Shown piece by piece: positions 4,968 through 53,600 of a stretch of DNA of 64,000 nt. The notes below the pieces were generated by a model that made no database searches, had not been told where the DNA came from, and saw only the letters and a list, made by a program, of their open reading frames with translations. A program made the translations under genes and the position numbers. The first letter of the stretch is position 1. Each line of letters begins with the position of its first letter. The stretch is from Podarcis filfolensis (taxonomy: Eukaryota): the NCBI GenBank assembly GCA_964270895.1, contig OZ185437.1; one strand, 5' to 3'.

Positions 4968-5173
4968 CTATAATGTCTTAGCCAGAGGTTCTGATGCCAT
5001 AGTTTTTGTCTGGAGCTGCTCTTTGTCTGTCTCTAGATTTGGATCCACTTGTTCCTGCATATCTGCTTTTACAGCATGGAGTGCATAGTTAATACTAGTG
5101 CTTTCAGTCCAGCTCCAGGACCCAAACAGGGGGTTGTACAACATTCCTTTCACTGTCTTGACTAAAAAGCCAT
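4968..5173 (-). CDS. COQ3: COQ3 terminal coding exon (NGFLVKTVKGMLYNPLFGSWSWTESTSINYALHAVK...AKTL*)
   Basis: Acceptor CTTTCTTACAG; TAG at 4968-4970. Confidence 0.95.
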
Positions 5174-8100
5174 CTGTAAGAAAGGAGAGAGAGACAGCAT
5201 AAGGAGACTATTCTTAAAAAGGTCCTAACATCCACAGTAAACATGTGCAAAATTTCCTGTAATGTCATTCTGGCACAATGGTGGTGTTGTCTCAATAAAC
5301 TGCGAGCCAAAGCAGCATTACGAACAGGTTTTAAATCTTGATGCTATCAAAACATTCAAGAATGTCCATCCCAAGTAAAATGTATCTTGCTGAATACAGT
5401 GCTACAAAGTCAAATTAGCACCTGGCTGATTATTTTTGAATTGTGACTAAAATCACAGGTTAACACATGCATTAACCCAAACTCAGAGTCAAAACAAAAT
5501 ACCTATCTTTAGAAAGTTGATGTTTATAATCATTTTTAAAGGACACCTACAATTTACACACCAACATTTTACACATCAGATGATCCAATAGTCAGTGTTT
5601 AGGTATATCTACATGTTCCTGTGTGTGTATATACCACTTCATCATTTCATTGTCAGCCCTCTCCCTCCCCCAAGTGGAATAAACACTGTTACCCAAACCT
5701 GCCACTTGTAGAACGGCACACTTGCCCCTTCCCAACCCCCTGATATCATACAGTAAATCTTCTCACTGATGCTTAATTAACATAAATTCCTAAAGCAGAG
5801 AAACTGTTTTATGATAGAATCCCTTCTGAAAAAAACACTTTAAATGCAACCTACAAAAATCAGGGTGAAAACAGGACACCAAAAAAGGACTAACAGGGCA
5901 AACCTATGTTCACTCGGAAGAAAGTCCTATTTAATTCAATAGAGCTCAACCCCAGGTAAGTGGGGTTAGAACTGCAGGACTCACTTCTGACAGGGACAAG
6001 ATGCTGCTCTCCCTGACACCTTCCCCCATTTAATTATTTACAGTCATTCTTCACCACTCTTCATCAAAGGATTCCAGGGTTGTGGGTGTAAGTGTGAACA
6101 AATTCACAACACTGTCTTTCACTTCCTGGTGTAAGCCTGGCAGGTCTTTTGATTTAGAAGAGTTTGGATTTGATATCCCGCTTTATCACTACTCAAAGGA
6201 GTCTCAAAGCGGCTAACATTCTCCTTTCCCTTCCTCCCCCACAACAAACACTCTGTGAGGTGAGTGGGGCTGAGAGACTTCAGTGTGACTAGCCCAAGGT
6301 CACCCAGCAGCTGCAGGTGGAGGAGCGGAGACGCGAACCCAGTTCCCCAGATTACGAGACTACCGCTCTTAACCACTACACCACACTGGCTCTAGATTTA
6401 GTATTTCATACACCTTAGATTCCCCCCACCCATTGACTACATATGATTACTCTGCAAAGCATGCTTGCTTTATGCGACACCTGTATCAAGGGATAGTTAA
6501 GGTCAGCTAGCAGCCAAACTTGAAGGAAGTTACTGACTATGTCCTTTCATTGGGGTTTAAACACTTACTTGACTCTAGGAGCCTCTCTAGCTCCTCAGGC
6601 GGTATGAACTTCTCCCAATCATGGGTGCCTGTCGGAACAATGCCCAATACTCTCTCAGCTACCACAATGCCAAAGATGTAGGACAGCTGTGATTTGTTGA
6701 TTGTAGTAATAAATAAGGAGCCTTCCGGCTTAAACAACAACAGCACAAGTGTTAGCACATCTGTCATATATACACAATATAACTAGCAGCATCCAGTTAG
6801 CGTGTGAAAATCAGGATTGTCACCAAAGTAAATAAAAAAAAATGTGGTTCAAGCTTAAATTGATTTTAAAAATCTTTACAGATTTTCAAGACATTGCAGC
6901 AGACACCATCTTAGAAAAAGAATTTCCTTACATATGTGCATATAATGCTTCTTCAAATATTATGCTTGCCTCCAGTTTTCTGGAATAAAACTATTTTAAA
7001 ATTCTGCCATCCCTACAAATACTGGCATCTTTCATGCCAATCACCAGATTTTTAATTGGTGAAACTAGCCTATCAGCCAAGTAATGTAGCCCTAAACATG
7101 TAGGCCTAGCCAAAACATATTTGCATGCATCAATTCAAAAACAGGTCTCATCAGAGCTGTTTGAATTTGTACTATAAGCAATGCAATTTACACTGAAGCC
7201 AAATTCAAATTTATTCATGTTACTATGGTTCTGAGATTGGTATACAGAATATCTGTTAAGCGTTACTGCAATATTTTTGTGCACTAATAACTGTTTGGCT
7301 GGTTTCTATAAGAAAACAATCTAGGGCCCCATCTGCATTCTATATTCAAAGCAGGATTGTATCACTTTAACAGTCATGTCTTTCCCCGCAAAATCCAGGG
7401 AACAGTAGTTTGTTAAGGGTGCTGAAAGTTGTGACAAGACTGCTATTCCTCTCGCAGAGGAATCTAATGGTTTAACAGTCAATCCCTCTTCGCAGGGAAT
7501 GCTGAGAGTTGTAGCTCTGTGAGGAACAGGGTGCCACAAGCCACACGGCAGGGTTATGTTATCGATAAACTACTATTATTTACCCTGGGGCCCTTGGGAT
7601 AAATAGAACTCAAAATATCTGCAGTCATACCTCATGTTACGTTTGCTTCATGTTATGTTTTTTCAGGTTGCGTCTCGTGGCGACGACAGAAAGGGTTACT
7701 TCCGGGTTTCGTCGCTCACGCATGCACAGAAGCACTAAATCGTGCTTTGCGCATGCGCACAAGCGCCAAATCGCACCAGCGTAGATACAGTGCTTCAGGT
7801 TGCGGGCTTTTCTTGTTGCGAACGGGCCTCTGGAACGGATCCCGTTCGCAACCAGAGGTACCACTGTACTTATTTATTTTGTGTTTTATAATTTATTTCC
7901 TTCATGTTTTTAGATCTGTACCCAGAACCCATTTATTGTCTGTTTAACATTTATTACCTCAGCAGGAAAAAGTGCAATATTCTAAAGGTTGTGTTTGTTT
8001 TCAATATGGATAATTTGAATCAATAAGGGTTGCATAAAATTACACTCTTTAGCACAAAGCAAATCAAAAAAAGGAAACCAATGCAAAACATTTCTTATAA

Positions 8101-11100
8101 TCAGCAGCTCAATTTTATAGTGCAAATGATTCAGCATTCTTTTTTTGCTTTCTTCCAACTCACTTTTAACACTTTGCTGCAGCACCTGATAAACATTTCC
8201 ACATCAGCCACATGTTCTACAACTTCAGAAGCTACAATGACGTCAAATGTGTCTGATGCCTCTTCCACAATATCCTCTAGCGTACAGGATTTGTACTGTA
8301 CTCTTTTAGCCAGGACTGGGTCAAATGATTTATGCAGTTCTGCTGTTCTAATGCTGTCTTCCAGAGGATCAATCCCAGTAACCGAAGCTCCCAGTCTACC
8401 TAGAGGCTAAGACCATAGACCCGTTAGTCTTTTCTGCTTAAAAAAAAATAGAATATGTAACCAAGTTGTTATTTGATTAGAAGGAAGTTACTGAAGAGCG
8501 TAAACTCCGAAGCTTCCTCCCTAACATCTATCCCTTTGGTGTCTCTCCACCCCCACCCCCACCCAAAAAACCCCCCTACTGGAATAATATAAGGGACAGC
8601 CCAATAATATTCAATTATTTAACTTTTTCTAGGTTGATTAAGGAGAACCGATCATCATAAGCATAGTTGCAGTTTAGACTGCCAGTTATAATAAATAGCT
8701 AATTATTTTGTCTTCTAGAAATTGTAGATCACAAATACACACTATGAGAAGTAAATCATGCATAAGGCTTCAATCCTGTCAGCACCTACTTTGAGAAGTA
8801 AATCATGCATAAGGCTTCAATCCTGTCAGCACCTACTTGGAAGTAAGGATCACTGAACACAGTGCAAAATAAAAGTAAAAAAAAAAAAACTTTGTGGAAG
8901 TTCCAGCAAATTAGGGAACTTCAACCCTTTCCACAAAATCAGTTGAAGTGTGTTCCGGCTCACAGTTTAGCTCTACAGCTAAATTCTGCATTTCCAGCAA
9001 GAACACAGCAACGTCCTGCCTGCACATAATAAATATGTGCATCGGCACACACACCATACCACTTTGCTTTACTCGACTATCTTACTCTAAATAATACCAT
9101 AATGAACTAATAGAGCAGATTGCAAGAGAGACTTCTAGTTAAACAAGTACTTGGAAGAACGAAATAAGCACTATTCAAAACTTCAGTGCTGTGCTACTTC
9201 AAAACAAAGGGTCAGGGATAAGAAAATTTATTATCAAAAGTTGTAAGCCCTACCTCAGTTAACAATCCACCACCACAGCCAACATCCAGGATCTTCACAC
9301 CAGAGAGAGGGCTTCCAGGCTGATGATCATTTCTCATATTTAAAACAGTATCTCTTACACAAAGTACAAAACAAATTATGTTTTAATTATGACCGTCCAC
9401 CAGTAAAGAGCTTTTAGTTGATCAAGTACACTTGCATATTACCAAAGCCTCAAAATGTTTGCCTTGTTGAGATATGGAATGAAATCGGGAAACTTTCTGA
9501 TTACTAAACAAAGGTTTAGGTTTATAAGAGGAAGAGTCATCCTTAATATTCTCTTCTTTTTCATCTCCTATTATAATACACACTCCAGAATCAACACTGG
9601 CTCAAAAATAAAGACCCATATGCTTACCTCATAGCTCCTATTATTAAAACACACCCTCACTAAGTGAAATTGGTCTCCACTAAGCTCAAATCCTATACAC
9701 CTTTATATGAGAGAAAGCCCCATTCAGCTCATTGGCACGTACTTGTGAATAGGACTGCTCATTCAGTCTACCACTTAAAGTCTACAGCTCCAGTTGTAAT
9801 AGCTTTGTACTCAGTAAATATTTAAGCTAAGCAATACAAATGAAGACACCTCTACTCTAAAAGGTGATGTGTTACAATTTTCAGATTCCCAGAAGTATGT
9901 AAAAGCTGACCCATTCCAAAACCTTACCTAATAAATGGCACTCTAATATCATTCATAGAATGAAGAGCTGCATAATCTCCATGCTCATCCCACCATTTAT
10001 GTGCCAGGAGTTGGAATTTTTTCATCTCCTTTGGATCGACTGTTGTTTGTGACATGCTGTAGTGTCGCTCTGTGAGTAACCTAAACATCAAAGGTGTTAC
10101 TACATTAGGTGGCATAAAAACAGGGATCAGCTAGCAAAAATTGATTTTAGAAGTGCAACAAGAAGTTTCCTTTATGGAAAAGAGAAATTTCACGAGTGGA
10201 TAAATTCAGATTACAGTTGGACCCCACATGATCGTTCCTTACATTGAAGGCTAATTTATTTGGGAAATAGTTTTATCAATGGCTAATAAACACAACAGCT
10301 TCATGGAAGCTGTTCAGGGAGTGACATTATGCCTCTGAATACCAATTGGTGGAGTATGAAAGATGGTGGTTTTCACGGCCTGCTTATGAACTTCAAAAAA
10401 ATCTAGCTAGCCACCCTAGGGTTAGTTGGGCCCTTGGTTTGAATCAACAGAGCACTTATTACATTCATGTTGACAAAGTCTAGCATGCAGAGACCCAATT
10501 ATATCTATTAGAGACTACAAACTATCTGACCTATGTAGAGACAAATAATTCACAAATCACATCCAGTAGTCCCTGAGGTGGATGTGCCAAATCCTGCTGC
10601 CCAATATATATAAATTATGCCTTACCACCATGTAATGACCCTTTTGTTTGAATAAAACAAATGGCTGTCCATTAGCAAGGTTTGCCATGCCACTACGTAA
10701 AACATTGGTGGCAGGGACACTAACATAGTGGCACAAAATGTGCTTTATGCTTATAATACAAAGGCACAAGCGCCCAGAATGCTACTAGTTTGTAGGCCAT
10801 GTACCAAGAGAGTTACAGATTACACTACTGTTATTTTTTTACTTATTAAGAAATGTATGAAAACCATAACCCCCTCAAAAAAAACCCACAACCTTCATTT
10901 TGAGCTGAGTCGATCATTATGAAGTAATCAGAAAATACAGAAAGTGTGGGAGGTCATTATTTTTGTTTATTACTATGTTATGCATTTTTGTGTTTTTATA
11001 TTGTAAACCACTCTGTGATCCTTGGATGAAGGATGGAACAGAAATTTAATAGATAAGAATAATACTCACATTGTGTTCCTCGCTTGAATCAAACTAACAA

Positions 11101-14529: not shown

Positions 14530-14535
14530 TTTATT
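14530..14535 (-). terminator. Candidate PNISR distal poly(A) signal AATAAA
   Basis: AATAAA ending about 1.3 kb of AT-rich, UTR-like sequence with no recognised repeats. Confidence 0.4.
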
Positions 14536-15812
14536 GGCATACAGACATTACTGAAATTAGTGCACTTGTGTGAATGAAATTTCCATTGATACAGGGAGTG
14601 ACAAATCCAGCTGGTGTAGTATATAAAAAGCTTCATGCACAATCTTGTTTACTTAACAAATAGAAGTCTAGTTTAAAAAGTGGATGCAGTAGATCATAGA
14701 AAGCTGTATTCCTCAGTACTTCATTTTAAAATAAATGGGAGCACTGAAAAAAATCTTTGCCCCCACTGTTTTAATTTTTGAACCAAATCTCTCAGATTCT
14801 TAGTTATCTAAAAACCAGTTTATCCTTAGAGCTTGTTTCTCTTCTTTCGTTTAAAACTACAGTAGGTTGAATTCATGGAGAAAGGGATGGGAGGACTCTG
14901 GGCAACATAATTGTTTGGTGCAGTTCTTTTTATGCAATATTTACTGGAAGATTTAATGGAACATTCCCAATTGCATATGCCACTGCATTCGTTAGCCATT
15001 TTTAAAGGGTATATTTAGTCAGCAGAATTATATTTAAAAACCAAAAAGCATAATACCCCTCATCAGAATGTATTATTTGACATTTTGAAGTTCCCAAGAA
15101 CTCAAAATGTTTGTTGACAGTTGTTTGGGATGGGCAGGTTGTAAATTTGCAGTTTGCAAATGCCTGTTTTTACGAGTTCAGTTCTATCAGCCAAAAGACC
15201 ATCTCTCTAGATGGTTAATATGTTGGAAAAAGAAGTTTAAAAACTGTCTTGTTTTTTAAAGTGAAACCATATTTCTAGTAATAAGTTGCAAGACCAGACC
15301 TAGTTATTTTTATGAACCTTCTGTATCACAGAGTTATTTAATGCAGAAGTTATAGAGTAATAAAACAAATGAATCCAAAATAGATTCTAGCTTCTCTAAC
15401 CATATGAACCATTATAGAGTGTGCTTTTTAACACAGAAGTAGGATATTGAGGAATAGAGTTTCAAAGTTACAAACTCACATCATACATGTTGTTTACTTG
15501 CACTTCGCTACTATTTGTGCTTGGCTAATATTGGTATGTTGTACAATAAGAATTATGCACATTTTAGTCACAGACAGTAGGATGATAATTCAATAAATGT
15601 TTTTTAAAAACAAAACCCTACAGTTCATTTTAACAATTCTTTTGCCCAGGTACTGACCGACCTTGAATTATCCAAGGAGGAAACTTAAAACACTGAGAAA
15701 ATTTAAAACTGACAAACTGTTCAGTATTTTACAAAAGTGTATTGTAAAAAAAAAAAAGTAATTTAAAATAAATTAAAATACAAGAATTTAAACAAAAAAT
15801 GAACTAAAGAAC

Positions 15813-15818
15813 TTTATT
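15813..15818 (-). terminator. PNISR proximal poly(A) signal AATAAA
   Basis: AATAAA with an upstream UGUA and a downstream U-rich tract on the minus strand. Confidence 0.65.
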
Positions 15819-16121
15819 GACATCACAGTACATTCAATAGCAATTTTAAGAACATTACAGCTGAAAGAGAATGGCATATTTCATAGTCTTAGTAAGCACT
15901 ACTAAGGAAAAATGTAAATACAAAGAAATCCTAGCAAGTACTTAACTCCGAGCAGCGTTTCCCAAAAATACAGCTATTTACAGATTATTTTTTTAAAAAG
16001 GAGGGTTCAGCTTTCACCTACACAGCCACAACTGTAGCCTCTATAATGAGCCTCTATAATGAGACAAGCCCTTAAAAACTCATGGAATTTTTAAATCGTA
16101 TGACTAGTGCCATATCATTCC

Positions 16122-16152
16122 TCAGCGTTTACGACGTGGAGGAGTCATTGAT
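16122..16152 (-). CDS. PNISR: Predicted alternative terminal PNISR exon (R)SMTPPRRKR*
   Basis: Very strong acceptor TTTCTCTTTATTTTTCAG at 16153, joinable in frame to donor AG|GTAGTA inside the last codon. Confidence 0.7.
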
Positions 16153-16398
16153 CTGAAAAATAAAGAGAAAGGGAGGGAAATTAAAGAGGAAAAGAACTAT
16201 CAAAAAACACACACGTTAGGCTTAAAAACTTAAATTTTCTTAGTTGGAAATCAATGCTATCAAAGTCGTTCCCATCCGCCGCCACCCCCACCCCACCGAG
16301 AATAATCTAGCTTAACTTGTAAAATATATAGTTGCAGGCATGATGATGAACAAAAACAGAAATAAATACATAAATCAAACAAGATACTTAAAAGAATA

Positions 16399-17516
16399 CT
16401 ACCTTGATCGTGATTTAGACTTGTGTTTGCGGCTTGCCTTCTTACCAGACCTTTGAGATTTCTCCACGGACCGCGACCGACTATGCTTTGCTTTCTTAGA
16501 CTTCTTTTCTTTGCTGCTGCCTGGTGACTCAGAACTGCTCCTTGTGCTAGATTCCGAACCTGAGTGCTTTTTGCTCTCTTTGGTAGAACTTTTCTTGCTT
16601 TCCTGCCTAGAATCATGCCTTAATGTTTTTGAGGAAACTGAATCGCTACGAGAGACCGTTCTTTCACTATCTCTTTTCCTCTTTAATCTCTCATCATGAT
16701 TGCCAGCTTTACTGTCTTTTTCTTCTTTTCTCTGTTTCTCTTTGCGCTTCTCCTGGTCTCTCTCCCTCTCTCTGTTCTTTTTCTTGTCTTTTTCTAGGCT
16801 CCTGCTGCGTTCCTTTTTCCTCTCCTGAACTTTACTATCGTGGCTGTGTTTGTGCCTGTTTCCACTTTCACTTCTACGCTGGTCCTCACTTTTACGCCTA
16901 TCTCGACTCCCACTACGAGTGGAAAGGCTAGCAAGTCTATCCCTTGAGTGACTATCACTTCTACGCCTCTCCCAGTTTCGGTCATGGGAAGGACTACGAT
17001 TTCGCCTCCTCTCCCCCCTGTCTGCACTCCTATGTCTACTAGATCTCCGCCTTTCTCTTACCTTGCCCCTACTCCTGCTCCTCTCTCTCCTGTTTCTGTG
17101 AGAATAGCTCCTGCTTCTGCTGCGCCTAACCTTATGTGAAGGTGATCTACTGTGGCTACGCCTCTTTTTCCTTTTAGGGGAAGAAGAATGTGAAGAGCTG
17201 CGACTGCTGCCAGAGCTACTGCTATAGGATGAACTAGAGGCTGTGCTGCTGCTACTACTGCTACTACTTCTGCTGTTGGCACTCGAACTACCACTGCTTG
17301 AACTTTTTGACCTACTCCTCCCTATTCTCTCTTTTTCTTTAACCTCTTTTTTGGGTTCAGCATCTGGTGTCATTTGCTTTGGAGATTTTTTCTTTTCACT
17401 GAACACATCCGCCTCCACCTCTTCTTTTGCATCCTCTGGTGGTGAACTGCTGTTTTGCTCTTTACTGGTGAGTTCACTCATCTCTTTAGCAATTTTCTCA
17501 TTCTGGAGCTTTTCTT
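16399..17516 (-). CDS. PNISR: PNISR last coding exon, RS/Ser/Lys-rich domain
   Basis: Acceptor TACTTCGGCAG; long open frame with a poly-Ser tract and RS dipeptides; TAG at 16399-16401. Confidence 0.96.
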
Positions 17517-20500
17517 CTGCCGAAGTAAGTGCATAAAAGAAACAAATACAAAAATACAAAAATCACGCCAAGCAAGATGGCAGAGATACAAGAAATCTCT
17601 CCCTACCGTCCACTAATGGCCAGTGTATCAACAAGGCAACATAGTATAACATTACTTCTTTTATATTACTTCTTTTCTGTAGCTATTTGAAAGTCAATGG
17701 AGCTTATTTACAAGTGAACATGAATTAGATTGGGTTTTTAATCATCAATAATTCCCTTTTTAATAGGGTTTTGAAGCAAGTATATAAATGGAACCTAAAC
17801 AATAATCACAATAAATATCTATGAAATATCTCTGTTGCCATGGGCAACTGTAAACTGGCAGTCTCAATGAATTCAGAGGAATCTTTGTAATATGTGTGTT
17901 CCTGGAATCTCTGTACTGGAAAGTGTGTGCCTTTCCCCAAGGATTTCTTCATGCTATAGCTAATTCTGCCTCTATTCTATCCAAAGATTCTAGCAGATTC
18001 TTTACTTGTTACATTCTGGATGTGAGCCAGTCCTTGTGTATCCAACTCTTAACAGATCTTAGGAATTACAATGGCCAAGGCCTCTGCTTATGAAATTTTA
18101 CTATCTGTGTTATTGACAGAGGTGAGGTCACCTAAAGATAAAACTATTTGGAGTTGTGAACTAGTATCAAAGCACAGAGAAAACCCCAAATTCCTCAGTT
18201 ACCTGTAATGTACTCTATAGCTCAGGCTTGTGTACATGGTGCATTATTCTGCGCTTGGCTCTCAGGTTGCAAGTTAGGGTACAAGCTGGCACATAAGTCT
18301 GAGAGGTTGGAAACCACTGCTGCTGTCGTCAATTCTGAACCAAACACACATCCTACCTTCCAGCTGTTTCTCTAGCAATAGCTGCTGTTCTCTCTCCTTT
18401 CTCCAAAATGCTTCTTGTTTTTGCCTGATTCTGTGTCGCAGTTCCTCGTCATCAGTATCGGATGACTCAGAGCCTCTGTCGCTCCTCTCATCGTCACTGT
18501 CTCCTGATCCATAACCACCCAGTCCACCTGCGTGCATAAAGCCTAGTCTATCACGAGGGAAGATTAATCCTGGTTCTTAATATTTCTGCAGGGCAAAGAG
18601 GAGAGTATATTGCCCATCTTTCACTTCTTCACTGAAGAAGCCACTTATTCTGGAGGAAGTGCCAAAGGTGGTTGACTGGATGTTCAAGGCCCACACATTT
18701 GACCTGCTGTTCAGTATCTGGTTTTACTTCTTCCGGAATAGCTTGCCATGTTTTCCAGCAAGCAATCGCTATGGTTACATACTTTCCCGTTAAGTATATG
18801 GGTAAAAAAGCTCTTTACAGAGCCAGTACCAAATGCTTAGTGTACATCAGCAAGAGCATATACACAGGAGTGCAGTGCCTAAGACCTGTCCCTGAAGACA
18901 TCTTTGCAATGATTTCAGCCAGCTTCAATATCCAGGGCTTTAAAAAGTCCCAAATGCCAATCAATTTTCTACTGTTCAGAAAAGACTGTACATTAAAGAG
19001 GTACAGGTATGGAATAGGAATGGACTTCTCTTCCCCCAAAAGATAGATCTGGAAAAACTAACAGGACTAGCAGAAAGTAATACTGAACATCTGATACAGA
19101 AGCATTCTTACTTTCTTTTTTATGTTCTCTTCAGTATTAGTTGACTAATACATTTAAGCTAACGTGAAAGATTTTTTTACTAGTAGTAAAAATATTTAAT
19201 ATAACAAGTTACTAAAATTGTATAATGTTACACTGATATTTCAAACATTTTTTTAAAAACTATTACATCTCAGAATGTAATTCTTAATTTCATATCCAGC
19301 ATATCCCAATATTACACTAACTGCTGGCTATGAGAACTCAAAACATACATTTGTTGTGTGGACTGCTGGCAGGACAAAACTGTAGATTTTTATTGGTTTC
19401 TTTTATCAAAGCACACACTAATAGCTGAATTAAAAACAGGAGAAAAATTCCTCCAAATTCACTTTATTTAGATACTGTAGTAGCTATCTGGTGCAAAACA
19501 TTTCATTTACAGGACAGGCTTACATTATGTTTACAATGGAAATAACACCACTGTACAATTTCGCGTATTTTAATAGGTTTATTTGCAAGATAAGCCCTTT
19601 CTAAGAAACACAAAAGTTATCAGATGCTTGCCTATTGCATGTTGGGCAGTTTCAATACATATTTAGAAATGCAAGCCAGAGCAATCTCCCCATTAAGTCC
19701 CTCTCAAAACTGGGAACATACTTACCAAGTCCAGTNNNNNNNNNNNNNNNNNNNNNNNNNNNNNNNNNNNNNNNNNNNNNNNNNNNNNNNNNNNNNNNNN
19801 NNNNNNNNNNNNNNNNNNNNNNNNNNNNNNNNNNNNNNNNNNNNNNNNNNNNNNNNNNNNNNNNNNNNNNNNNNNNNNNNNNNNNNNNNNNNNAGAAAAA
19901 ACATTAAAAACGTAATCCATTGAAAACCCAGTTATTTTCTGGCCACGAATGTTTAGAAATTTAAACTGTGAATTAATAGTGGATAGATCAGTTTCTTATA
20001 GTTATACATTTCCAAGTTAATAAATTTCATCTGCACAGAACTGTATATAATTATTTACTCACAACTACATGGAATAAAGCTGCCTATTTTCGTAAAAAGA
20101 AAATAGCTGGCTAACAGTGAAAGCAAATTCATTCATAATTCAAGTATGCCTTAAGTTTTACTCAGCTAAATTTGAACTACAATTATCTAAAATATGTAAA
20201 CATTTAAAATAAATAAATGACATTCTATAGGAAAGAAATGGAATAACTGAAGTTAACTCACAATACACTGCACAGAACAATACACTGCACAGGACAATAG
20301 TATATGATTATTACAACTGAATTTTTGCAACTTTTCTTCCTTAACATACAGACTGCTTTTAGGTACAGATACTATGGATTTAAATGTTCTAGGACATGCA
20401 AAAGGATATTTAATTAAAGTACTAGAAAGCCTAAACATACCTTTTATTGCTTTACGATGGGCATCTTTAGCCACGTAATATATTTCTTCATTTGTGACAT

Positions 20501-23500
20501 CTAGGAGAATTTCTGTCAGCAGCATTTTTGTCAGTAACATCTAAACAATTATAAATATAAAATCCCCAGTTCAAACACAATTCTCAGCAAACCCTTGCAA
20601 TTCTATTCGGTTATTCAGGTTAGGAAGCATAATGGTTCCTTTACCCATGATTTCTTGGAACTACTGAAGAAAGCATTGGGCTCACACTATGCAACTTCTT
20701 ACATGTTCAACCACAAGCAACGTACTTTAAAATGTACCTATTTGTTCAGTATGCACAGCAGTTCACCTTGCATTCAGTGATGTGTAGTCAAGTAATGAAA
20801 GCAGATGGAAACAGAGTTTGGGAGAGAAGAGCGCTACAAGCACATTTCACATACATCTTTTCTGAGTAAGAGAATCAAGATCCTTATAGGAATCTGTTGA
20901 TCCTATAAATCAAGAGCTTGAATTATCTAAAGTTTGCTCAAGCATTTATAAACCTTTGGGTATGTTATGTGTACCTAACTTGACTCTAGCCATTCTCTCC
21001 CCTCGCCATGCATCTTATATCAGCACCATATCAGTGACATCCAGTGTCGCGCTAGCCGATAACTTTACAAAAGGTCATATATGTCCACTTTTTTGCCCAA
21101 ATTTGGTTCTATGTCCTTTCTCAAGCCGGTCATATGTGTAGTTAAATGACAATGCTGGTTGTGTGGCTTTAAAGTTGGAGTGCATACAACCATTTTGTTC
21201 TTGCCTTAATAGCTACTAGTGGAAGCACTAGTGGAGGCACAGAGAACTTGCTTGCTAGCAGGCTTGCTAGCTTTCTCTAGCTTAGCCCAAGGGGAACAGC
21301 TTTTTCTAATAACTAAGAGTGCAAATTTTAACTAATTAAGGACAGGTTGATTAAAGTTGTTTTTATTCAACTCAAAAAGGAATCCTTGCTTAATTGTTTA
21401 AAAAAATGTTTTTAAGTAAGCATAAACAACAGGTGACAGACACCATCTTTAAAGAGGCACCCCCTTCAATTATGTAAAGGAGGGAATGCCTCTCTAAAAT
21501 TGCACTTGCTGCAAAATACATGTACACTATCTAAAAACAGAGTTTTCTGCAAACTATTATTTTAGTCAAATGAATTTTAACAAAAATTAATTAAATCAGC
21601 ATTATTTGATAAACCAACTATGATTTCTTTAAATAGAATGGCAGCCCTACTAATAAGCAAGCTCATACAGGCATGGCCAATGAAATGGTCCCAAACTCAT
21701 CCATACCATCTGATACTCCTTTTCTTCCTCTGTCATTTCTGGTTCGCTTTGCTCCTCTTGAGGAGCTGGAGAGGGACTTCTACTGACTTTTCCACTACTT
21801 GTAGCTTCTACGTTATCAAGATCTTCATCTTCTTCATCACTATCCTATAAGAAAAGAGTTATGAAATAGGTTAAAATACGGGTTAGTATTCAATGCAGCA
21901 TTATTACAACTGTTCTGTCAGTGCAATAAACTTTTTCACTTACAAATTTACTTTTCTGAGGTAACCGTGGTCCATCTTCTTCTCCTGTGTGAGCATTTTC
22001 CTTTTTTTCTTTCTTAGACAACTGAGAACGCTGCTGCTCCATTCTCTCTTTCTCTAGCTTCTTTTGCTTTTCTCGTTCCATCTTCTCTAGGCCCTCACGA
22101 ATCCATGCAGGCAGAGTTCGGCGTTTAACAGCATCTAAATATTCATACAGAAAAATAGTTTCTTAAAAATGAACCCATTCATTTTCTTTTTAAGCTCATC
22201 AGATAATTGATGTGTTTGAGGTTTTTAGGATGTTTCACGGGGAGAAAGTCACTGTAGCTTTCTAATTCTCTTCCTAGGCTAAGCTAGACATTGTGGTGGC
22301 AAAGACATAAATAGGAGTTGGGATGTGGCTAAGGTAAAGGACCCCTGGACAGTTAAGTCCAGTGAAAGGCGACTATGGGGTTGAAGTGCTCATCTCGCTT
22401 TCAGGCCGAGGGAGCTGGCGTTTGTCCACAGACAGCTTTCTGGGTCATATGGCTAGCATGATAAACTGCTTCTGGCGCAAGAGAACACCGCGACGGAAAC
22501 CAGAGCGCACGGAAACGCCTTTTACCTTCCCGCCACAGCAGTATCTATTTATCTACTTGCACTGGCGTGCTTTTGAACTGCTAGGTAGGCAGGAGCTGGG
22601 ACAGAGCTACAGGAGCTCACACCGCCATTTGAAATCCACAGCATAGGAAGGTGCAAGGGAAATCTCCTGCCCATGCATTCTCTCAGCATTTTCTCTCCTA
22701 TTGGGGCTCCAAGATCAGCACGCTCAAGCTGTGATAGTACTGTACTGATAACAGGAGCTGGTTCAGCCCAAGGCACTACATTTATTAAAATTAATATGAT
22801 GAGGACATACCGATTTGAGGAGTCTCCTGTTTTGCAGGTAATGTGATAGGTGAACGCTGGCGATCTCTGAATGCTGGCCTCTCCCTTCGATTCTGAGGTG
22901 GTGCAGGAGGTGCTGGAGGACCTGGAGGGCCTGGTGGTCCAGGCTGCCAGTAAGGTGGATGAAACCCACCTTGAGGTGGACCAAAATTAGCCCCATGCTG
23001 AAAGAGTAATGAAGCTCATTTTCTTTCAGATCAATGCTACACATTTCCTAACTTTAATATTTGGTCTGTACAAAAATGCACAGTAGAAAGAACCTTACTA
23101 AAGTTGAATAGAAGCCCTTTTAATATTTTAAGGGACAGCCTATATTCTCTGAACTGTGAAAGTGACAGTTTCAGAAAAGAAAATTGACTAGTCCTTCTCA
23201 TTTCAGAATTCAGAAATAGGAATTTTGCATTACTGTAACACAACATAAATAAACTGGAAAAGTTCCAAGTCCCTTCTGTATTGGATGGGTGTTGGAAGAG
23301 AAGATTTAAGTAGATAAATTAATTATATTAATTTCAACTACAATTATCAGCTTGATTTATAGTTCAAAGGAAAGCCACCGTAGCTGCAGTAAGCCAGCTG
23401 CTAGTTTGGGATATAAAGTCAAGGAACATAACATCTAAGTTTCTTTCTTTTTAAATCATACTTGCCCCCGGTTATGAGAGTTGTAAATTAGTTTATGCTA

Positions 23501-34520: not shown

Positions 34521-34740
34521 TTTCGCACTTCGAGACTACTGCGAATAAGGATGAGCCCAGTGGATGGTCCTTGCAAAATTAAGACATGCCTCACGCTCCT
34601 GTGCATGTTTACCCAGAAATAAATCCTACACTGAATGGTATTATTCCTAGGTGAGTGCGCGTAAGGTTGCAAGCACGGCAAGTGAAGTAGTCTGAGTGAC
34701 CTACATCTAATGCCGCCCTAAACTGCAATTATAAACATTT

Positions 34741-35108
34741 TTTGTTGTTGTTTAGTCGTGTCCGACTCTTCGTGACCCCATGGACCAGAGCACACCAGGC
34801 ACTCCGGTCTTCCACTGCCTCCCACAGTTTAGTCAAACTCATGCTGGTAGCTTCGAGAACACTGTCCAACCATCTCGTCCTCTGTCGTCCCCTTCTCCTT
34901 GTGCCCTCCATCTTTCCCAACATCAGGGTCTTTTCCAGGGAGTCTTCTCTTCTCATGAGGTGGCCAAAGTATTGGAGCCTCAGCTTCACGATCTGTCCTT
35001 CCAGTGAGCACTCAGGGTAGATTTCCTTCAGAATGGATAAGTTTGATCTTCTTGCAGTCCATGGGACTCTCAAGTCTCCTCCAGCACTAGAATTCAAAAG
35101 TATCAATT
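34741..35108 (-). mobile_element. 5'-truncated BovB/RTE LINE with open C-terminal ORF
   Basis: RVPWTARRSNLSILKEIYPECSLEGQIVKLRLQYFGHLMRREDSLEKTLMLGKMEGTRRRGRQRTRWLD is the characteristic BovB/RTE C-terminus; (CAA)n tail. Confidence 0.92.
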
Positions 35109-44600: not shown

Positions 44601-47600
44601 GGATATTTTGGACATAATATTGGAGAAAAAATATTTCAGATTTGATTATTAATTTTATAGTCAAACTAAAAGAATGGCTCTGGGAAATCCTGTTGCCCCT
44701 AGCACAGCAAATTTATGTAAGTCCTACTTCAATAGCAACTATCAGTTCTGAAAAGAAGAAAAACCTTCATGTACAGTACAGCAAGTATATGATACACAGA
44801 TATTTATATTACTGCTAATCAGGACTGTGTGCTTTCCCCATGTTTTATACAGGTGAACATGGATGATATTCAGTTTACTGATCATATAGACTTACAACAG
44901 ACACAGTGTTCGATGTTATGATTTATAACTCACACATACAAATTTGTGTAAAAAAAATTTACAGTAAATCCACTTTTGAAACAGATTAGATACAGTCATG
45001 GAAGAAACACTTATCAATTTTTAATTAGCCCAGACACTCAAAACAGTGTCTCCATGCACTGAAGCAATATATCTCTGATTATCGGGTGCTAAGGGCAAAC
45101 AACTTGTGGAAGTAGACAGACCTCAGTCTGGTCCAGCAGGTCATATTTCTAAACTTCTAAATTAGGTTTTGAAGGGAGTAAGTTTCTGCCAGAGAAAATT
45201 CAACTAGAGGAAACTATTGTCACCTAACCACTCTCCAACTGCATTATTTCCCATGTTTACAAACCACAAGACAAATCTCCATATCTTTCATATTGGAGTG
45301 ATTTTGCTGAGAGGAACTGGGAGACATCAATAGAAGAAGAAAAACACTGTAAATGCATTTTGGCCACAAGAGGGCATTAATATACAAATACAAATTAATG
45401 AAAGATGGTGACAAATGCCGTATTTATTTAGGTCCTCTAGAATAAATAAATCACACATGCACGTATAGACAAAACCTATTTATGCTACTGGAATAAATTA
45501 CATATCTGGGGAATCTGCATAAATTTCATCAATCACAAGCTTTGTATTATATGCCAATTAGAGTTAAGGTTTTGTGGAGTTTCTTGTTGTTGTTTTTAAT
45601 TTGAAGTGCTTTGAATGTATCACATCAATATGTAATTGAGTGCATTTGTAGCCAAAATGGCATTATTCACACAGAAGAGGGAGGTTATTAGCATGCTCTG
45701 GAGAATCACAAGTTCTGTAGAGAGACAGCCCAAAGAGGACTGAGTTTGCCTGAGTGAGCATAGAATGACAACCAACTGTCCCAAATCCTGCACGGGAGCA
45801 CTGTACACCACAACCTTATTTTGCAGGCCCCATTTGTGTTTGTGTCATACAAATGTAATGGTTAAAAAGATTTAAGATTATTGAAGAACTGTACTGAGGT
45901 CAAAAAGATTTGCAAAGACATGGTGAGATGAACAGATTCCCCTCAAAAATGCACATTAGTTCAGTCTCTTAAATGTCACTGGTTGTGTTCTGTGGTGCAA
46001 TCATACAGCTTTTCAGGGACTCTTGGTTATACAGCCAGAATCCAAAGAACTATTTTAGGCTGATCAAGGTCTTGGAAATGCCCAAAAAGAGTTCTGAACT
46101 TTATCTCTGGAGAGCGGACTTTCATGCCGGGTGACAAAAGGTCTTTGAAATTCCTCTCTGTTTCAAATGCAGTTTACCATGCAGGATTGGTACCTCTGGT
46201 TACGTACTTAATTCGTTCTGGAGGTCTGTTCTTAACCTGAAACTGTTCTTACCCTAAAGCACCACTTTAGCTAATGGGGCCTCCCGCTGCTGCCACGAGA
46301 TTTCTGTTCTCATCCTGAAGCAAAGTTCTTAACCCGAGGTACTATTTCTAGCGGAATCTATAACCTGAAGCGTATGTAACCCAAGGTACCACTGTAATAC
46401 ATTCCCCGTCCCCCCGCAAGTGTGCCAGAATCATACACTCCTTTGGACCCTGAAAAGTTGTCTATGTGAAACAATATACTCAGCCACCATTTCATTACCT
46501 GTGAAATTTCCTTTCTTCTGGTGCTTCTGTTTCCGTTCCGTACAGTTCTCACACAAAAGTTTGTTGTTTCCCATTAAGAGCTCCACATATGTAAACTGGT
46601 AGAGGCATGACTGAACTGAACATTCTTTAGAACTAGTTATGTAACATTGAGAAAGAGTCTGGAAAGCATTTTGAGGGTTTTGCAGTAACGTGGGGTTCTC
46701 TGCTGAACCGTCTATGTTGTTGGACAGACTTGACAGCTGATCTCTACTGAGAGTCCCTTCAGTCTCACTGACACCACTACCCAAGCAGAGGTTTGATAAG
46801 CCAGTAGTAAGTCCCTCTGTACCGCCATCACTTGATTTGTTACACTGTGATTTAATGCTTGCAGATAAACGTTTATGCTCATCAGTGCACAAGCCAGGTG
46901 TGCTACAAGCTCTGCTGGAAGCAGTTTGCTTAGAATGACTTTCGCTTTCAGAGGCCTCACTGTCTGCCCCAATGCTACTTTCAGAATGACTTGCTTCTTT
47001 TTCACTGCCTTCCGTCTGACTTCCATTTGCTGCAGATTCCATTACCGAACTGCTGTCTCCTGTATATGGAACAGCAGATCTGCCTTCACCTTTAGTGTTT
47101 CTGACTTTTTTGTGCATGATAAAATGTCTTGTATCTTCTTCAGCAGAGGAGGATTTTTTGGCAAATCTTCTTTCATGATTTTCTTGGTTCTGTCAATTTC
47201 CACATCATTAGCAAAAGGGAGGAAAAAAACCCAAACGTAAGTCTGTTGAAAATCCATAAAAGCATTGCACTAACTCTTAAAAGCATTTCAAAAAGATGGT
47301 TTTTAAAAAACAAAAAACAAAACAGTGTTTATTTGCTTTAAAATGTCTTTGGCGATGTACTCCAGCCTGAAATATCCTACCTTTCTGAGACAGAAAAACC
47401 CTTTAACCTATCTTATGGAAACCCTACAGCCCCTCCCAGGTGTTAAGATCAGCAGAAGGGGCTTCTTGGTAGTTCTACTACCCTCAGGAGTTTGGGTGGT
47501 GGTAGTCCTGGAGAGGGCATTCTCTATGGCAGACCCCAATATCCTTGTGGATTTCCATGGTCTTTATATAAGATGACAACAAAACCAGCCACAGAAGGCA

Positions 47601-50600
47601 CAAAGACCTACAATTTGATAATGGTTTTGAGGGGATTCCTTGCACAAATGATGATGATCCACAAGTATCTGTGCATTGGATCCATGTTTTTGCATGGCAG
47701 TGCTGGAAAGCTCTGGATCTGTGATGTTTACAGATTAGTGAACACAGACACAGCTGACCAGTTATTTGATAGGAGTTGCAGGGGAGTCCAGTTTCCTTTC
47801 CCCAAATAACTCGCCTACCCCCATGCCCTTCTCAGTTACTCCACCTTCTGGTTAAGCTACTCAGGTACAGATGAGCTCTGAAAAGTATATAGAGCTGAAA
47901 GATGTAGTGCCTAAAGGTAAAGGGACCCCTGACCATTAGGTCCAGTCGTGGCAGACTCTGGGGTTGCGGCGCTCATCTCGCTTTATTGGCCGAGGGAGCC
48001 AGCGTACAGCGTCATGTGGCCAGCATGACTAAGCCGCTTCTGGCGAATCAGAGCAGTGCACGGAAACGCCGTTTACATTCCCGCTGGAGCAGTACCTATT
48101 TATCTACTTGCACTCTGATGTGCTTTCGAACTGCTAGGTTGGCAGGAGCCGGGACCGAGCAATGGGAGCTCACCCCGTCGTGAGGATTTGAACCGCCGAC
48201 CTTCTGATCGGCAAGTCCTAGGCTCTGTAGTTTAACCCACAGCGCCACCCGCATCCCTAGGTAGTGCCTAGGATATCTTAAATTAAATGCATTAATTTAG
48301 TATTGCAAACAAAAATATTTAATTACTAACTAAACTTAAAGCTTAAATTCAATTTTTGATTCCATGCAATTCAAACTTAGATTCCATCTGTAATAAAATC
48401 TCTTACGCTTTCAAAATCAATTTATCTTAAGGGCTTGTAAAACTTCTGCAATAAATAAAGAAAAAACAGTGGCAGTTCATTCCTCTCATGACTCCAATTC
48501 TACAATATTTCATGGATGGATTATTCTTAACATAAAGCAATTTTGGCTGGTTTGAGCAGTAAGTGGGATATGAAAGCATAAAAAAATGAACGTGTACAAC
48601 TTAAGTAAAACTGAAAGTGTTTAAAAATCCCTCTCGAGAACTATATGAACACTATTATACATTTATCAACACTACAAAGTTTAACTTTGATTAACAAAAG
48701 CAGCATTAGGCTCAGCAAAAAGGATTTAAAAGCCTGCCTTCCAATGAAGTGTTGGTTTTTTTCCAAATGCCCTTGGATATTCAGATATAGCTGGGCTTTC
48801 TGTCATCCTTGGCTAAGGAAAGAGGATCCCAACACATGGTGTTTGGAATTGGCAGTGCCCTATCTCAAAATAAATTTTCTAGTAAATATAAAGATGGTAA
48901 ATATCCCTTAGGTGATAGTCCTAAATTACCTCAGCTGGAACTAAAGTCCACTGAATTCAACCGGGCACACATACAAGTTTATGTTTATATGACCAAGGGG
49001 ACCAAGAAAGCTTTCCACTAGCAACAAGGAACTTTCTAAATGAAAAGTGAACCATTTAACTATAGAGTGTAAAGACCTCTTTAGGTCATTTACACACTCC
49101 TCAGATGTGTTTCTCTTTATTTTAATTCAGACTTTGAATTCTAAAATTAATCAGCCTCTAGACCCTATTAGAATTTTCCCAACTAGCTGTATTATTATGG
49201 GCAAGTCACTCATCTAAAAATGGGAACGGCTTCCATTAATTTCCATGGCTCAAAGCTTATACTCTTAAAAGCCTTTCTAAACAATCAGGAGGAAGGGAAT
49301 TGCACTTTAGTTGCATGGGATCCAAAATACCCTTCCTTACAGAAGCACTTGTATTGGCTGCATCACATTTTCCTAGTGCTCAAATCACAGCCTATGTTGC
49401 TCTTCTCCCAGCAAGCAAGGTCCTTGGATTGAAAATTCTGCCAGGAATGTGGCTGAGCAAGTTTCATGGGCCACCAACAGGCCATCATCATTTCAGGAAA
49501 TGGAAGAGTCCAAGCCTGTACCCCAGAGTAGGGGACCCACTACCAATACCTGCAGGCTCCTGATCCTGATATACTCATCCTCGCTGCTGCTTGTTTATCC
49601 GCCCTCTTGAAAGAAACAAGCAAGGAGAAGGAGCAGAAACCCAGCATGCCTCACTGATTATCTTAGAGGACTGGGCCAGTGGGAGAGGTAAGCAAGTGAG
49701 AAACAACAGCAAGGTAGAGGGCGATCTCATGCCGTATCTTGCCTCAAAGTACCAAAAAGCAGCACTTGGTACTATCAGTGACTTACTGATACTGCTGATG
49801 ACATTCTTGATCACCCCATCCCATGTCTGAGACTGCACAAAAGAGACTTGCATGAAAGTTGAAATTGACTGCTTTCCCACAGGCCAACTATTGGGGGGTG
49901 GGGCGAAACTCATAGTGTTTACAATTATTCAATTCCCATTGAAGGATTTCCCAAATAGCCCCTGAAATTCAGTTCCCTGTATTGCTAAGCTCTGGATTCC
50001 TCCACATACAGTCTGAGCATTCCCACTTGTCTTGCCTTTTAAAAATAAGAAGGGGGGAAGGGAACACAGCACAACTATTATTCTCCATGCATTGTACATG
50101 GCCTCAATTTCTCACTGCTACCTCTGAATCAATATGGATTTTTTCTCCCAAAGATTAAAACATAGCAGGGGCAGACTGTGGACTGATGGTATCGCCACAA
50201 TTCTTTTAGTGAGCTTTGCCACTGTACAAGTGGTAGAATGTTTGAAGGAAGCCTTGTGGTCCAGTTTCTGAAACTGGAAAAATAAAAAAAGCATCTCCTA
50301 ATTCCAGACTCCATTAAAAAAGAGGGGGAGAGTTTCTACAAATTTGCATGACTGCATACAAAGAGATGCCAAGTAGAAGATTTTGTGCTAAGAGCAAATG
50401 CATCAAAATCTGAAACAGACAACAAAAATAAAAATCAAAGCATTTGTGTGTATATGGTAGTGGGGGGGTGGAGAGAAGGGGGGAGAGAGAAAGAGCACAA
50501 TAATGGAAGGGAATGGAAAAATAAAAAGCATAAATAGACATTGAAACCTTAATGCCATCCAAAAATAAATAAGTAGGTTTTAAGATTTTCAGCAATGGTA

Positions 50601-53600
50601 TTTTTAAAGTCAGTGGATTAAAAGAACGACTAGGAGATGGGAAATTCTGCCAGACTGCCTTAGAGGCCTCACGCTCACCACTCAGCTGTTAAGCAAAAAA
50701 TTTTTTCATCTGTCAAATGCTGAAGGATATAGGTTAAAATTTTAAATGAAAAATGGTCTGAAGTATTCTATTTTCAATAAATGATCTAAACATAAAAGCT
50801 TTCCTTGTAAAATAATCTACAGTAGAATATTTGAAGCAAAAAATATCAGCATCTCACATTGTATTAGCACATCATATCTGCAGCATGCTGTGCCACCATC
50901 AGGAAGAACCATGTTAAGAGGCTGAACTATGGTTCATAGGCCCTTGGGCCACTGGAGGCTGAGCACATCATGGAAGCCATGTTCCAAGTCTCCTGGGAGA
51001 CTGTGTTGGCTGCACTTCTCATATAGTACACCCTGCCAACTGATCCACCAAATGGCACGAAGGCTGACTTGTCTGCTCTCTTGGCCAGCCCTGCACTGCT
51101 TGCAATTGCAGCCAGAAGCAAACTTGGACAACACTAGAGGAAAGCAGGGAGGAGGGCACAGAGTGTGGAGAATGAATTTGAAAAGTAGCTTTTTATTTTA
51201 TTTTATTTTAAGAAATAAATATCATTTTTAAACCCTTTTTTTTTTAAAAAATCACCTACAGACACACACACATACAATATTTATAGGTGTGGGTGTGAAT
51301 ACATCACACACATTTAAGTTTCATAAATACAGTACTTTAAAATGTATTAACACCACATCATGAGCCCCGGAAGTATTCGGTGTACATATATCAAAAAATC
51401 TGCAATACAGTGCTGTAGATTAAAAGAGACCTATTCAAACCAAATTTGCAGCAAATTTCCATAAAAATGTGATTTGTTATACAACTAGTTGAACTACAGA
51501 TCAGCAATGCTGTTGCATTCTTACCTTATCTTTTGTTAACAAATGTTTTCTAGACAATTTAGATTGTTGATTATTCAGAGCAGTAACAGAAGAACAGTTG
51601 TACTCAACATCTGCTTCTTGGATATGTTTACCTCTGCTTGTCCTCCCAAAAGGAACAGGTTTTGAGATCTGGAAAATACACATGGTTATTCAAGGTAAAA
51701 CATACAATCTCCTATATAAAAAAATATCTTTCCCCCCTACCTTTTCCAAACAAGAAAGTGCTGGCTTATATCAATATGCACAGGGTAAATCAGACATTTG
51801 ACACTTTAAAAAAATATATATCTGGTTAGTTTACTGGTCAAGTTCTAATCATATCGTGTAAAATAATATTAATGTGTTTAAAAATTTAACTAGATTGTGT
51901 TAATAATTACAAAGACATGTATCTTCTAGAAAACTTCACAAAATTACTGCTCCCAGAAACTTGAGAGAGTAGCAAAGGTCAAGGCTTTCCTTTTAAAAAG
52001 CAAATACAATGGGCTAAATCAGCCTTTTCCAAGCTCAGGTCCCTAGTTGTTGCTGGTATACAGCCCACATCAACCCCAACCATCAGTCATGTTTGAAGGG
52101 AATAATGGAGGTTGCATCTGGGCACCCAAGGCTACAGAAGGCTGGGCTAAGATGTAGTCCTAAGCCTTGAGCACTTGCAATCTATGCAGGGTTGCTCCTT
52201 CAGGAACTCCAGAAGCTGCCTTACACTCGGTCAGGCTACTGTTTCATCTTGCTCAGTAACTAGCAGTGACTTTCCAGTTTTCAAATGGGGTTTTCTCTGT
52301 AGATGTAGGGACTGAACCTGGAACCTTCTACATGCAAAGCACATGCTCTGCTAATAGAGCTTCAGCCCTTCTCCAAGAGCTATGGTCCTGCCCTCAAAAT
52401 GTTCCGACAACTGTAGCTAAGTGTCTATGAACAGCTGTAGAATTTCCAAACATAAATAAAGTAGTCCCTGAGCATTTTCAGAGCACATTCATCTATTATA
52501 AATTCATTTGGGTATTTTATACCCTGCTTTTAGGATTAAAATTTCTCAAAGCCCTTTTTTGTTAAGTTCACGAAGAACTGATGTCTGTCTCACCATTAGG
52601 CTGACTACCTAGGATGGCTGCAGTGTGATAGGTGTAAATCAGCAGTGACTTAGGAGGCTGTCTGAAGTAGGGGAAGAACTTGTGATGCACCTCCCCCAGC
52701 TGTTGTTGGACTCCTAACTCCCATCGGCTTCGAGCAGCACGGCACATGGTCAGAGAAGAGTTTGAGTCCAGCGACAGTTGGGATCTCCACCAGTTCTCCA
52801 TCCCTGCAATATGTGAAGTCTAAGTGTTTCCTACAAAATGGTGGCATCATTGCCTTATTAAGGAGTGCATGCATTTGCACATACATATTCATTACATACA
52901 AGTGGTCAAACATGTAGTAAATTGAACCAGCTTTCCAACTCCAGAACAAGTATAAAAAGTATAAAATTGCTTGAAAAAGAAGACACACACACACAAAAAA
53001 CACAACCCACAAGTAAAAGATCCTGCAAGCTGAATGTAGAGATTTAGCCAACTCCACCTAGCTTTCTTCACTGCACCTTCCATAGTCATTACATGCTGGT
53101 TTCTCTGTTGAGAGATACTGTTTGCTAATCTATTTTACATAGCAGGGTCCTAGGGTTTTAAAGGTCCCCTCCACCTGCTTGACTGGCCATGTACCACATG
53201 CTTCAAGGCATATCCTTCCTTTCTTTTCTATTGGTGACCGGTTAAAGTAATACAGTACAGCTGAAAGTGTGTACTCACATATGCTTGTTTTAATAAATTT
53301 CAATTCACAGAAAAATGTGGTAGATTTGTACATGCATATGGGCTATCCAGTCCAAATCAGTAGCACTAGCCTAAGGAGATCATATGTTGCAGAAAAGCAA
53401 AAGAACTTCAACTCTACAGGTCATACTCAAACATCTGATAAGGCTGGGCCTGTACAGAATACAAACTTCATTTATTTGCTCATTTCAAAGTCGTGAGGCG
53501 GCTTAGATAACCAGCTGAGGACTGCATCCATCAGAAATAGCTCTTTTCCCACAACAGTGATCCTTACCCATCCCCAATAATGCTACTTGTTAAAAATACC

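Follow-up and report, generated by a model that had tools for sequence, protein, structure and literature searches.

The last coding intron of PNISR in Podarcis filfolensis probably is constitutive and leads to the conserved C-terminus of the protein

The window, by which we mean the whole stretch of 64,000 nucleotides analysed here, carries the gene order USP45-PNISR-COQ3, with all three genes on the minus strand. USP45-like exons lie upstream of PNISR at 58.7-46.5 kb (46512-58687), and COQ3-like exons lie downstream of it at 10.0-5.0 kb (5040-10043). A COQ3-type methyltransferase gene is likewise the next one after PNISR in alligator, pigeon and elephantfish. Exon 22138-21935 of the central gene matches the Pfam family PF15996 (PNISR) at 92.1 bits and exon 20540-20442 matches it at 47.3 bits (cut-off 27), while tblastn with the PNISR proteins of alligator, Varanus, coral snake, pigeon, chicken, bat and a cyprinid recovered 8-9 collinear exons over 27433-16402. 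The highest mean identity to the window's exons, 86%, was found for PNISR of the monitor lizard Varanus. On the evidence of PF15996, exon-by-exon identity and synteny, the gene is PNISR (PNN-interacting serine/arginine-rich protein), as an earlier note on this DNA had proposed from the letters and open reading frames. The large RS-rich exon by itself gave zero Pfam matches, because its sequence is of low complexity.

Several database models merge PNISR with COQ3 or with USP45, reflecting either read-through transcripts or annotation merges. Between exons 20540-20442 and 18528-18358, tblastn detected no counterpart of the small exon for residues ~445-462 of alligator PNISR (APAKQLAQSSALASLTGLG), and a run of 158 N bases (19736-19893) lies inside the interval 20441-18529 that would hold it. 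Elsewhere in the window, an ORF at 34729-35106 on the minus strand is a candidate BovB/RTE-type LINE element that ends ...RRRGRQRTRWLDSV...EDRSAWCALVHGVTKSRTRL, a tail which we take to be typical of the C-terminus of a BovB/RTE-type LINE reverse transcriptase. Together with the lizard and snake matches of PNISR, this element points to a squamate genome.

The 3' end of PNISR is made up of the following features, all read on the minus strand:

16403..17516, minus strand: large, RS/KS-rich penultimate coding exon of PNISR, 1,114 nt, with tblastn matches to alligator, Varanus, bat and fish PNISR
16153..16402, minus strand: last coding intron of PNISR, 250 nt, phase 2, U2-type GT..AG, donor AAG/GTAGTAT
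16372..16402, minus strand: 5' segment of that intron, gtagtattcttttaagtatcttgtttgattt, its first ~30 nt, near-identical in alignments of the amniotes compared
16271..16296, minus strand: G-rich run ggtggggtgggggtggcggcggatggg within the intron, lineage-specific
16153..16180, minus strand: polypyrimidine tract and acceptor ccctccctttctctttatttttcag, with AG at 16154-16153 and A at 16152 as the first exon base
16122..16152, minus strand: start of coding sequence in the last exon, comprising the third base of a split Arg codon, SMTPPRRKR and TGA 16124-16122
14530..16121, minus strand: presumed 3' UTR of the last exon, of predicted extent, with AATAAA at 14535-14530 (local scan for poly(A) signals, excluding 15795-15839)

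Downstream of the presumed 3' UTR, the COQ3 exons begin only at ~10.0 kb. At the other end of this region, the acceptor of the large exon (...ttcggcag/aa gaa aag) agrees with the alligator protein, ...KQLEEEKLQNEKI. The first 2 nt of the exon complete a codon and its last 2 nt, AG, begin a split Arg codon, and from its 1,114 nt with two bases left over it follows that the next intron is in phase 2. The exon ends ...aaa tca cga tca ag/gtagtattc, with 16403 as its last base, so that, read exon by exon, its product ends ...KKASRKHKSKSRSR and SMTPPRRKR with its stop is encoded by the next exon. A long, RS/KS-rich open reading frame in the ORF list (16399-17559, 386 aa) runs beyond this boundary and terminates at TAG 16401-16399, an in-frame stop that overlaps the donor GT at 16402-16401.

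The end of this open reading frame at a stop embedded in a donor explains why the earlier note took TAG to be the gene's stop and described a tail, SMTPPRRKR, that splicing would optionally add. Its reading of the letters was accurate throughout: the donor, the TAG, the 250-nt gap, the acceptor, the frame, the nine residues and the TGA at 16124-16122 all lie where it had placed them. The interpretation differs. In the gene model favoured here, the spliceosome would join AG 16404-16403 to A 16152, giving AGA (R) followed by TCA ATG ACT CCT CCA CGT CGT AAA CGC TGA; the Arg codon would thereby be completed and S-M-T-P-P-R-R-K-R added, with the stop of the spliced mRNA in the last exon. TAG 16401-16399 would belong to the 5' splice site and be translated as a stop only upon retention of the intron, an event predicted to shorten the protein by nine residues. 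As no exon junction would lie 3' of either stop, both isoforms would be expected to escape NMD. The human equivalent of this intron, by exon count, is presumably intron 11 of a 12-exon PNISR gene.

The presence of a stop codon inside a donor is of little help in telling a regulated intron from an ordinary one. In a phase-2 intron, the codon that follows the split one consists of intron positions +2 to +4 and has the form T-R-N, and the consensus GTRAGT turns these positions into TAA or TGA in most phase-2 introns; here, the donor GTAG gives TAG. Because the in-frame stop is thus supplied by the splice-site consensus in most introns of this phase, it is no signal of regulation. A minor-class (U12) intron was also considered for 16153-16402 and was rejected, as the intron ends in GT..AG and its pyrimidine tract is of the U2 type. 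A scan of 15840-18700 against Rfam found no RNA family, and hence no known snoRNA or other described RNA within the intron.

One means of deciding which stop is the usual one is to ask how PNISR proteins end in the databases, where most orthologous models have been predicted computationally. In a word search, the large exon (low-complexity sequence) gave only four PNISR proteins, those of alligator and three fishes, and when the C-terminal 99 residues of the alligator protein were used as the word-search query there was no match besides the query itself. The four C-termini, ...KHKSKSRSRSTTPPRRKR, ...RSASPPRRSRR, ...RSASPSRRKR and ...RSTSPSRRSRR, all take the form ...KHKSKSRSRS[TA][TS]P[PS]RR[KS]R(R); examples of ends that carry the tail are ...SRSRSTTPPRRKR for alligator and ...SRSRSASPSRRKR for fishes. 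The exons of the window, read separately, fit the same RS/KS-rich end, ...KHKSKSRSRS-x-[ST]-P-x-R-R-x-R. Word searches and a cluster look-up then defined a set of 28 database proteins by the exon-end motif S[RH]KHKSKS[RP]S, and 24 of these 28 continue to the C-terminus through the tail R-S-x-[ST]-[PL]-x-[RH]-.... Two others (flounder isoform X5 and an entry from Sinocyclocheilus grahami) stop at ...KSRSR, and the last two have a different end, SVDPTAV. In flounder, the tail is present in isoform X4, of 826 aa, and absent from X5, of 816 aa, which stops at ...KSRSR; the ten residues of the tail are all that separates the two. In mosquitoes (dipterans), PNISR proteins end ...SRSRSRSPSRRRY, similar to the vertebrate tail RSRS-x-SP-x-RR-x-R, and the C-terminal motif may therefore predate vertebrates.

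A second line of evidence comes from the same intron in other vertebrate genomes. Five loci were compared, namely this window and the PNISR loci of alligator, pigeon, camel and elephantfish (the teleost of the set); the rhino locus was left out, its exon-end motif lying beyond the reach of the available sequence. The exon end and donor, intron length, acceptor and tail in each are:

This window: ATCAAG/GTAGTAT, intron of 250 nt, acceptor TTTTTCAG/A, SMTPPRRKR and TGA
Alligator: ATCAAG/GTAGTAT, intron of 241 nt, acceptor CTTTTCAG/G, STTPPRRKR and TGA
Pigeon: ATCAAG/GTAGTAT, intron of 241 nt, acceptor TTTTTCAG/A, STTPLRRKR and TGA
Camel: ATCAAG/GTAGTAT, intron of 239 nt, acceptor TTTTTCAG/A, STTPPRRKR and TGA
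Elephantfish: ATCAAG/GTAGTAT, intron of 456 nt, acceptor CTCTTGCAG/G, SNSPARRWR and TGA

Behind the acceptor, the tail in the four comparison genomes consists of TCA, eight further codons and TGA, and in alligator the annotated CDS terminates exactly at the tail TGA (locus position 37492). The four amniote sequences keep the acceptor YYYTTTTCAG/R, and CGTCGTAAACGCTGAGGAAT in the tail exon is invariant among them. Identity among the amniotes is 89-94% over the last 120 nt of the large exon and 84-94% over the tail coding sequence, and 48-77% across the last coding intron, the middle of which is without conservation (48-57% between the window, the archosaurs and camel). The intron position, phase and splice sites and the frame and stop of the tail are, in the sequences aligned, common to vertebrates from teleost to mammal, and the recurrence of donor, acceptor, phase, tail and stop in four other genomes goes beyond chance. 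The acceptor and the nine-codon frame are, among the other amniotes compared, conserved in alligator, pigeon and camel.

That same conservation bears on the earlier note's ranking of the two ends. With 24 of 28 proteins carrying the tail, with the same intron, tail and TGA in the other genomes and with the alligator CDS ending at that TGA, the tail is best taken as the canonical C-terminus: SMTPPRRKR is, on this comparative evidence, the normal and deeply conserved end of PNISR rather than an alternative or extended one, and ...KSRSR followed by a stop is what retention of the intron would give. We take 16402-16153 to be, with a probability of roughly 0.9, the last coding intron of PNISR and a constitutive one, and we infer that the predominant PNISR mRNA of this species is the spliced one. 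The gene structure described here is already known. The window agrees with the reference structure of PNISR (also SFRS18 or SRrp130) in the position and phase of the intron, in its donor heptamer and type of acceptor, and in the tail motif and stop. It differs from alligator, pigeon and camel in residue 2 of the tail, which is Met in the window and Thr in those three, and from the reference structure in an intron ~10 nt longer, with a lineage-specific G-rich insertion.

The opposite ranking, in which the short protein ending ...KSRSR would be the main product and a minority splicing event would add a CDK-regulated tail with a nuclear localization signal, draws on the fact that the long open reading frame does terminate at the TAG, and on a tail with a T-P-P-R that matches [ST]-P-x-[KR] and with a basic RRKR. 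It is very hard to reconcile with a tail found at the end of most database PNISR proteins, and with the conservation, from teleost to mammal, of tail, frame and stop after this intron. Moreover, the acceptor of this intron has a long and clean pyrimidine tract, PNISR has further basic clusters, and after [ST]-P-x some fishes have H in the place of K or R, while S-P is replaced by S-L in one lineage. We consider this ranking highly improbable, and the "splicing switch" of the earlier note is not borne out, as the form with the tail is the standard one and ...KSRSR an unusual product of intron retention. The correction is of some use in itself, given that an ORF ending in a donor-embedded stop had made the normal C-terminus of PNISR look like an alternative one.

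As to what the tail might do, TPPR and RRKR are both present in the window as candidates for the motifs [ST]-P-x-[KR] and K-[KR]-x-[KR], respectively. Most orthologues retain the [ST]-P dipeptide, with R or H (H in several fishes) as the +3 residue, and the lineage with S-L in place of S-P is one of flatfishes. Another basic cluster, PKRKKRR, occurs in the same large exon, and with other basic clusters in the protein the tail is unlikely to be its only nuclear localization signal. The conserved [ST]-P and basic end of the tail looks most simply like a continuation of the RS domain, and roles as a CDK site or as a nuclear localization signal are guesses from the sequence.

Sequencing runs offer a further, coarser view of the locus. 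Fourteen small runs guessed to be RNA (from five studies with three organism codes) contained 0.78-0.83 of the sampled words of 15700-17520, and six genome-sized runs contained 0.86-0.94 of them. Words touching the intron make up ~16% of 15700-17520, which sets a ceiling of ~0.84 for spliced mRNA, and the shares in the small runs are therefore compatible with spliced mRNA, a comparison that is only suggestive.

The G-runs to which the earlier note had drawn attention are indeed present in the intron, at 16296-16271, and G triplets can help define small introns, although the present data call for no such role. The runs are not conserved: at the corresponding position, alligator, pigeon and camel have either no such run or AT-rich sequence; a single GGG occurs nearby in alligator and in pigeon, and none in camel. 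A conserved splicing element made of these G-runs was accordingly rejected as a candidate.

The donor of the last coding intron is itself unusual. Its bases at +4 to +6 are G, T and A, all three at variance with the consensus. Six further PNISR donors were identified in the window, and in five of these +5 is G. A donor this weak makes appreciable retention possible, and it is conceivable that an intron that is usually spliced also serves as a switch, in which a weak but invariant donor containing TAG permits retention under certain conditions. Retention would then produce either a nuclear-detained transcript, and hence control of PNISR dosage, or a stable mRNA for a protein without the [ST]-P and basic tail. 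Such a switch would be a regulatory layer on top of the constitutive intron and no replacement for it. The GTAGTAT heptamer, with its departures at +4 to +6, is nonetheless identical in all five genomes (AAG/GTAGTAT in the window, alligator, pigeon, camel and the teleost alike), the next ~25 intronic bases, CTTTT(T)AAGTAT[CT]TTGT[CT]TGA, are almost invariant in the amniotes compared, and intron length is steady among these at 239-250 nt. In addition, flounder is annotated with both forms, the S. grahami entry ends ...KSRSR, and PNISR intron retention has been reported in mammals, for intron 10 (PMC10325915) or for an unnamed intron (PMC13219678).

Each of these points also has a simpler reading. 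Where a gene is highly conserved, any of its constitutive introns is expected to show conservation close to the splice sites, the comparison is limited to five genomes, and the middle of the intron lacks conservation. Reads from unspliced pre-mRNA in annotation pipelines may be all that lies behind the predicted isoforms ending at the donor, and the published PNISR retention that was found concerns a different intron, namely intron 10 (>1 kb), which precedes the large exon (PMC10325915), or one left unspecified (PMC13219678). We therefore regard a regulated switch as unlikely, and the constitutive intron remains the preferred explanation.

The retained or detained introns of splicing-regulator genes, described as a class (PMC4281565) and for ARGLU1 (PMC5389617), provide a useful comparison. 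Like detained introns, the PNISR intron is short, has a weak donor and conserved flanks and lies in a gene for an RS-domain protein, and some annotated PNISR isoforms end as retention would predict. Unlike in the detained-intron systems, retention here would cost only nine residues and would create no premature stop 5' of an exon junction. In a further difference, from intron 10 and the other PNISR cases, retention of the last coding intron is absent from the literature found and is a prediction from the sequence.

How a donor that departs from the consensus could be recognized, and perhaps tuned, is also worth considering. Roca et al. (Genes Dev 2012) reportedly described non-canonical recognition of 5' splice sites by U1 through bulged registers. 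AG/GUAGUAU could pair with U1 at -2 to +3 and again at +4 to +7 with one bulged U1 base, and such pairing (AG/GUA plus GUAU) would account for the seven invariant intronic bases. In addition, 16372..16402 includes TAAGTAT, which by eye fits positions +2 to +8 of the 5' splice-site consensus. The donor with its TAG and the ~30 conserved bases may, then, be a selected, tunable site that sets the ratio of full-length to retained PNISR and so allows the gene to regulate itself, a proposal that we put forward as speculative and think doubtful. Its efficiency would perhaps be set by the bulged U1 register or by the nearby U1-like TAAGUAU acting as a decoy, and the retained transcript would be either detained in the nucleus or translated without the phosphorylatable basic tail. 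If true, this would give an RS-domain splicing factor a device for regulating itself, and the rigid conservation of a weak donor and of the bases that follow it may merit attention in research on intron retention in splicing-factor genes.

Other PNISR isoforms were noticed along the way. ORFs that read through two further PNISR donors, at 18274-18537 and 20253-20540 on the minus strand (...EKQLEGRMCVWFRID... and ...HRKAIKGMFRL...), match the C-termini of short isoforms from the monitor lizard (...EKQLEGRLFIWFKIN) and coral snake (...HRKAIKGMFRLL...), and intron-retaining short PNISR isoforms are thus annotated in squamates at other introns. A model of alligator PNISR (613 aa) skips, in frame, ~200 residues from the middle of the RS-rich large exon. 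In bat isoform X4 and a pigeon model, a position internal to the large exon is spliced to that same last acceptor in a different frame (...DQQ[PL]L[SF]VVNAEE), and in the window this alternate tail frame stops at once, after DQ. Either the large exon contains exitron-like internal donors, as the alligator, bat and pigeon models would suggest, or these models are annotation artefacts.
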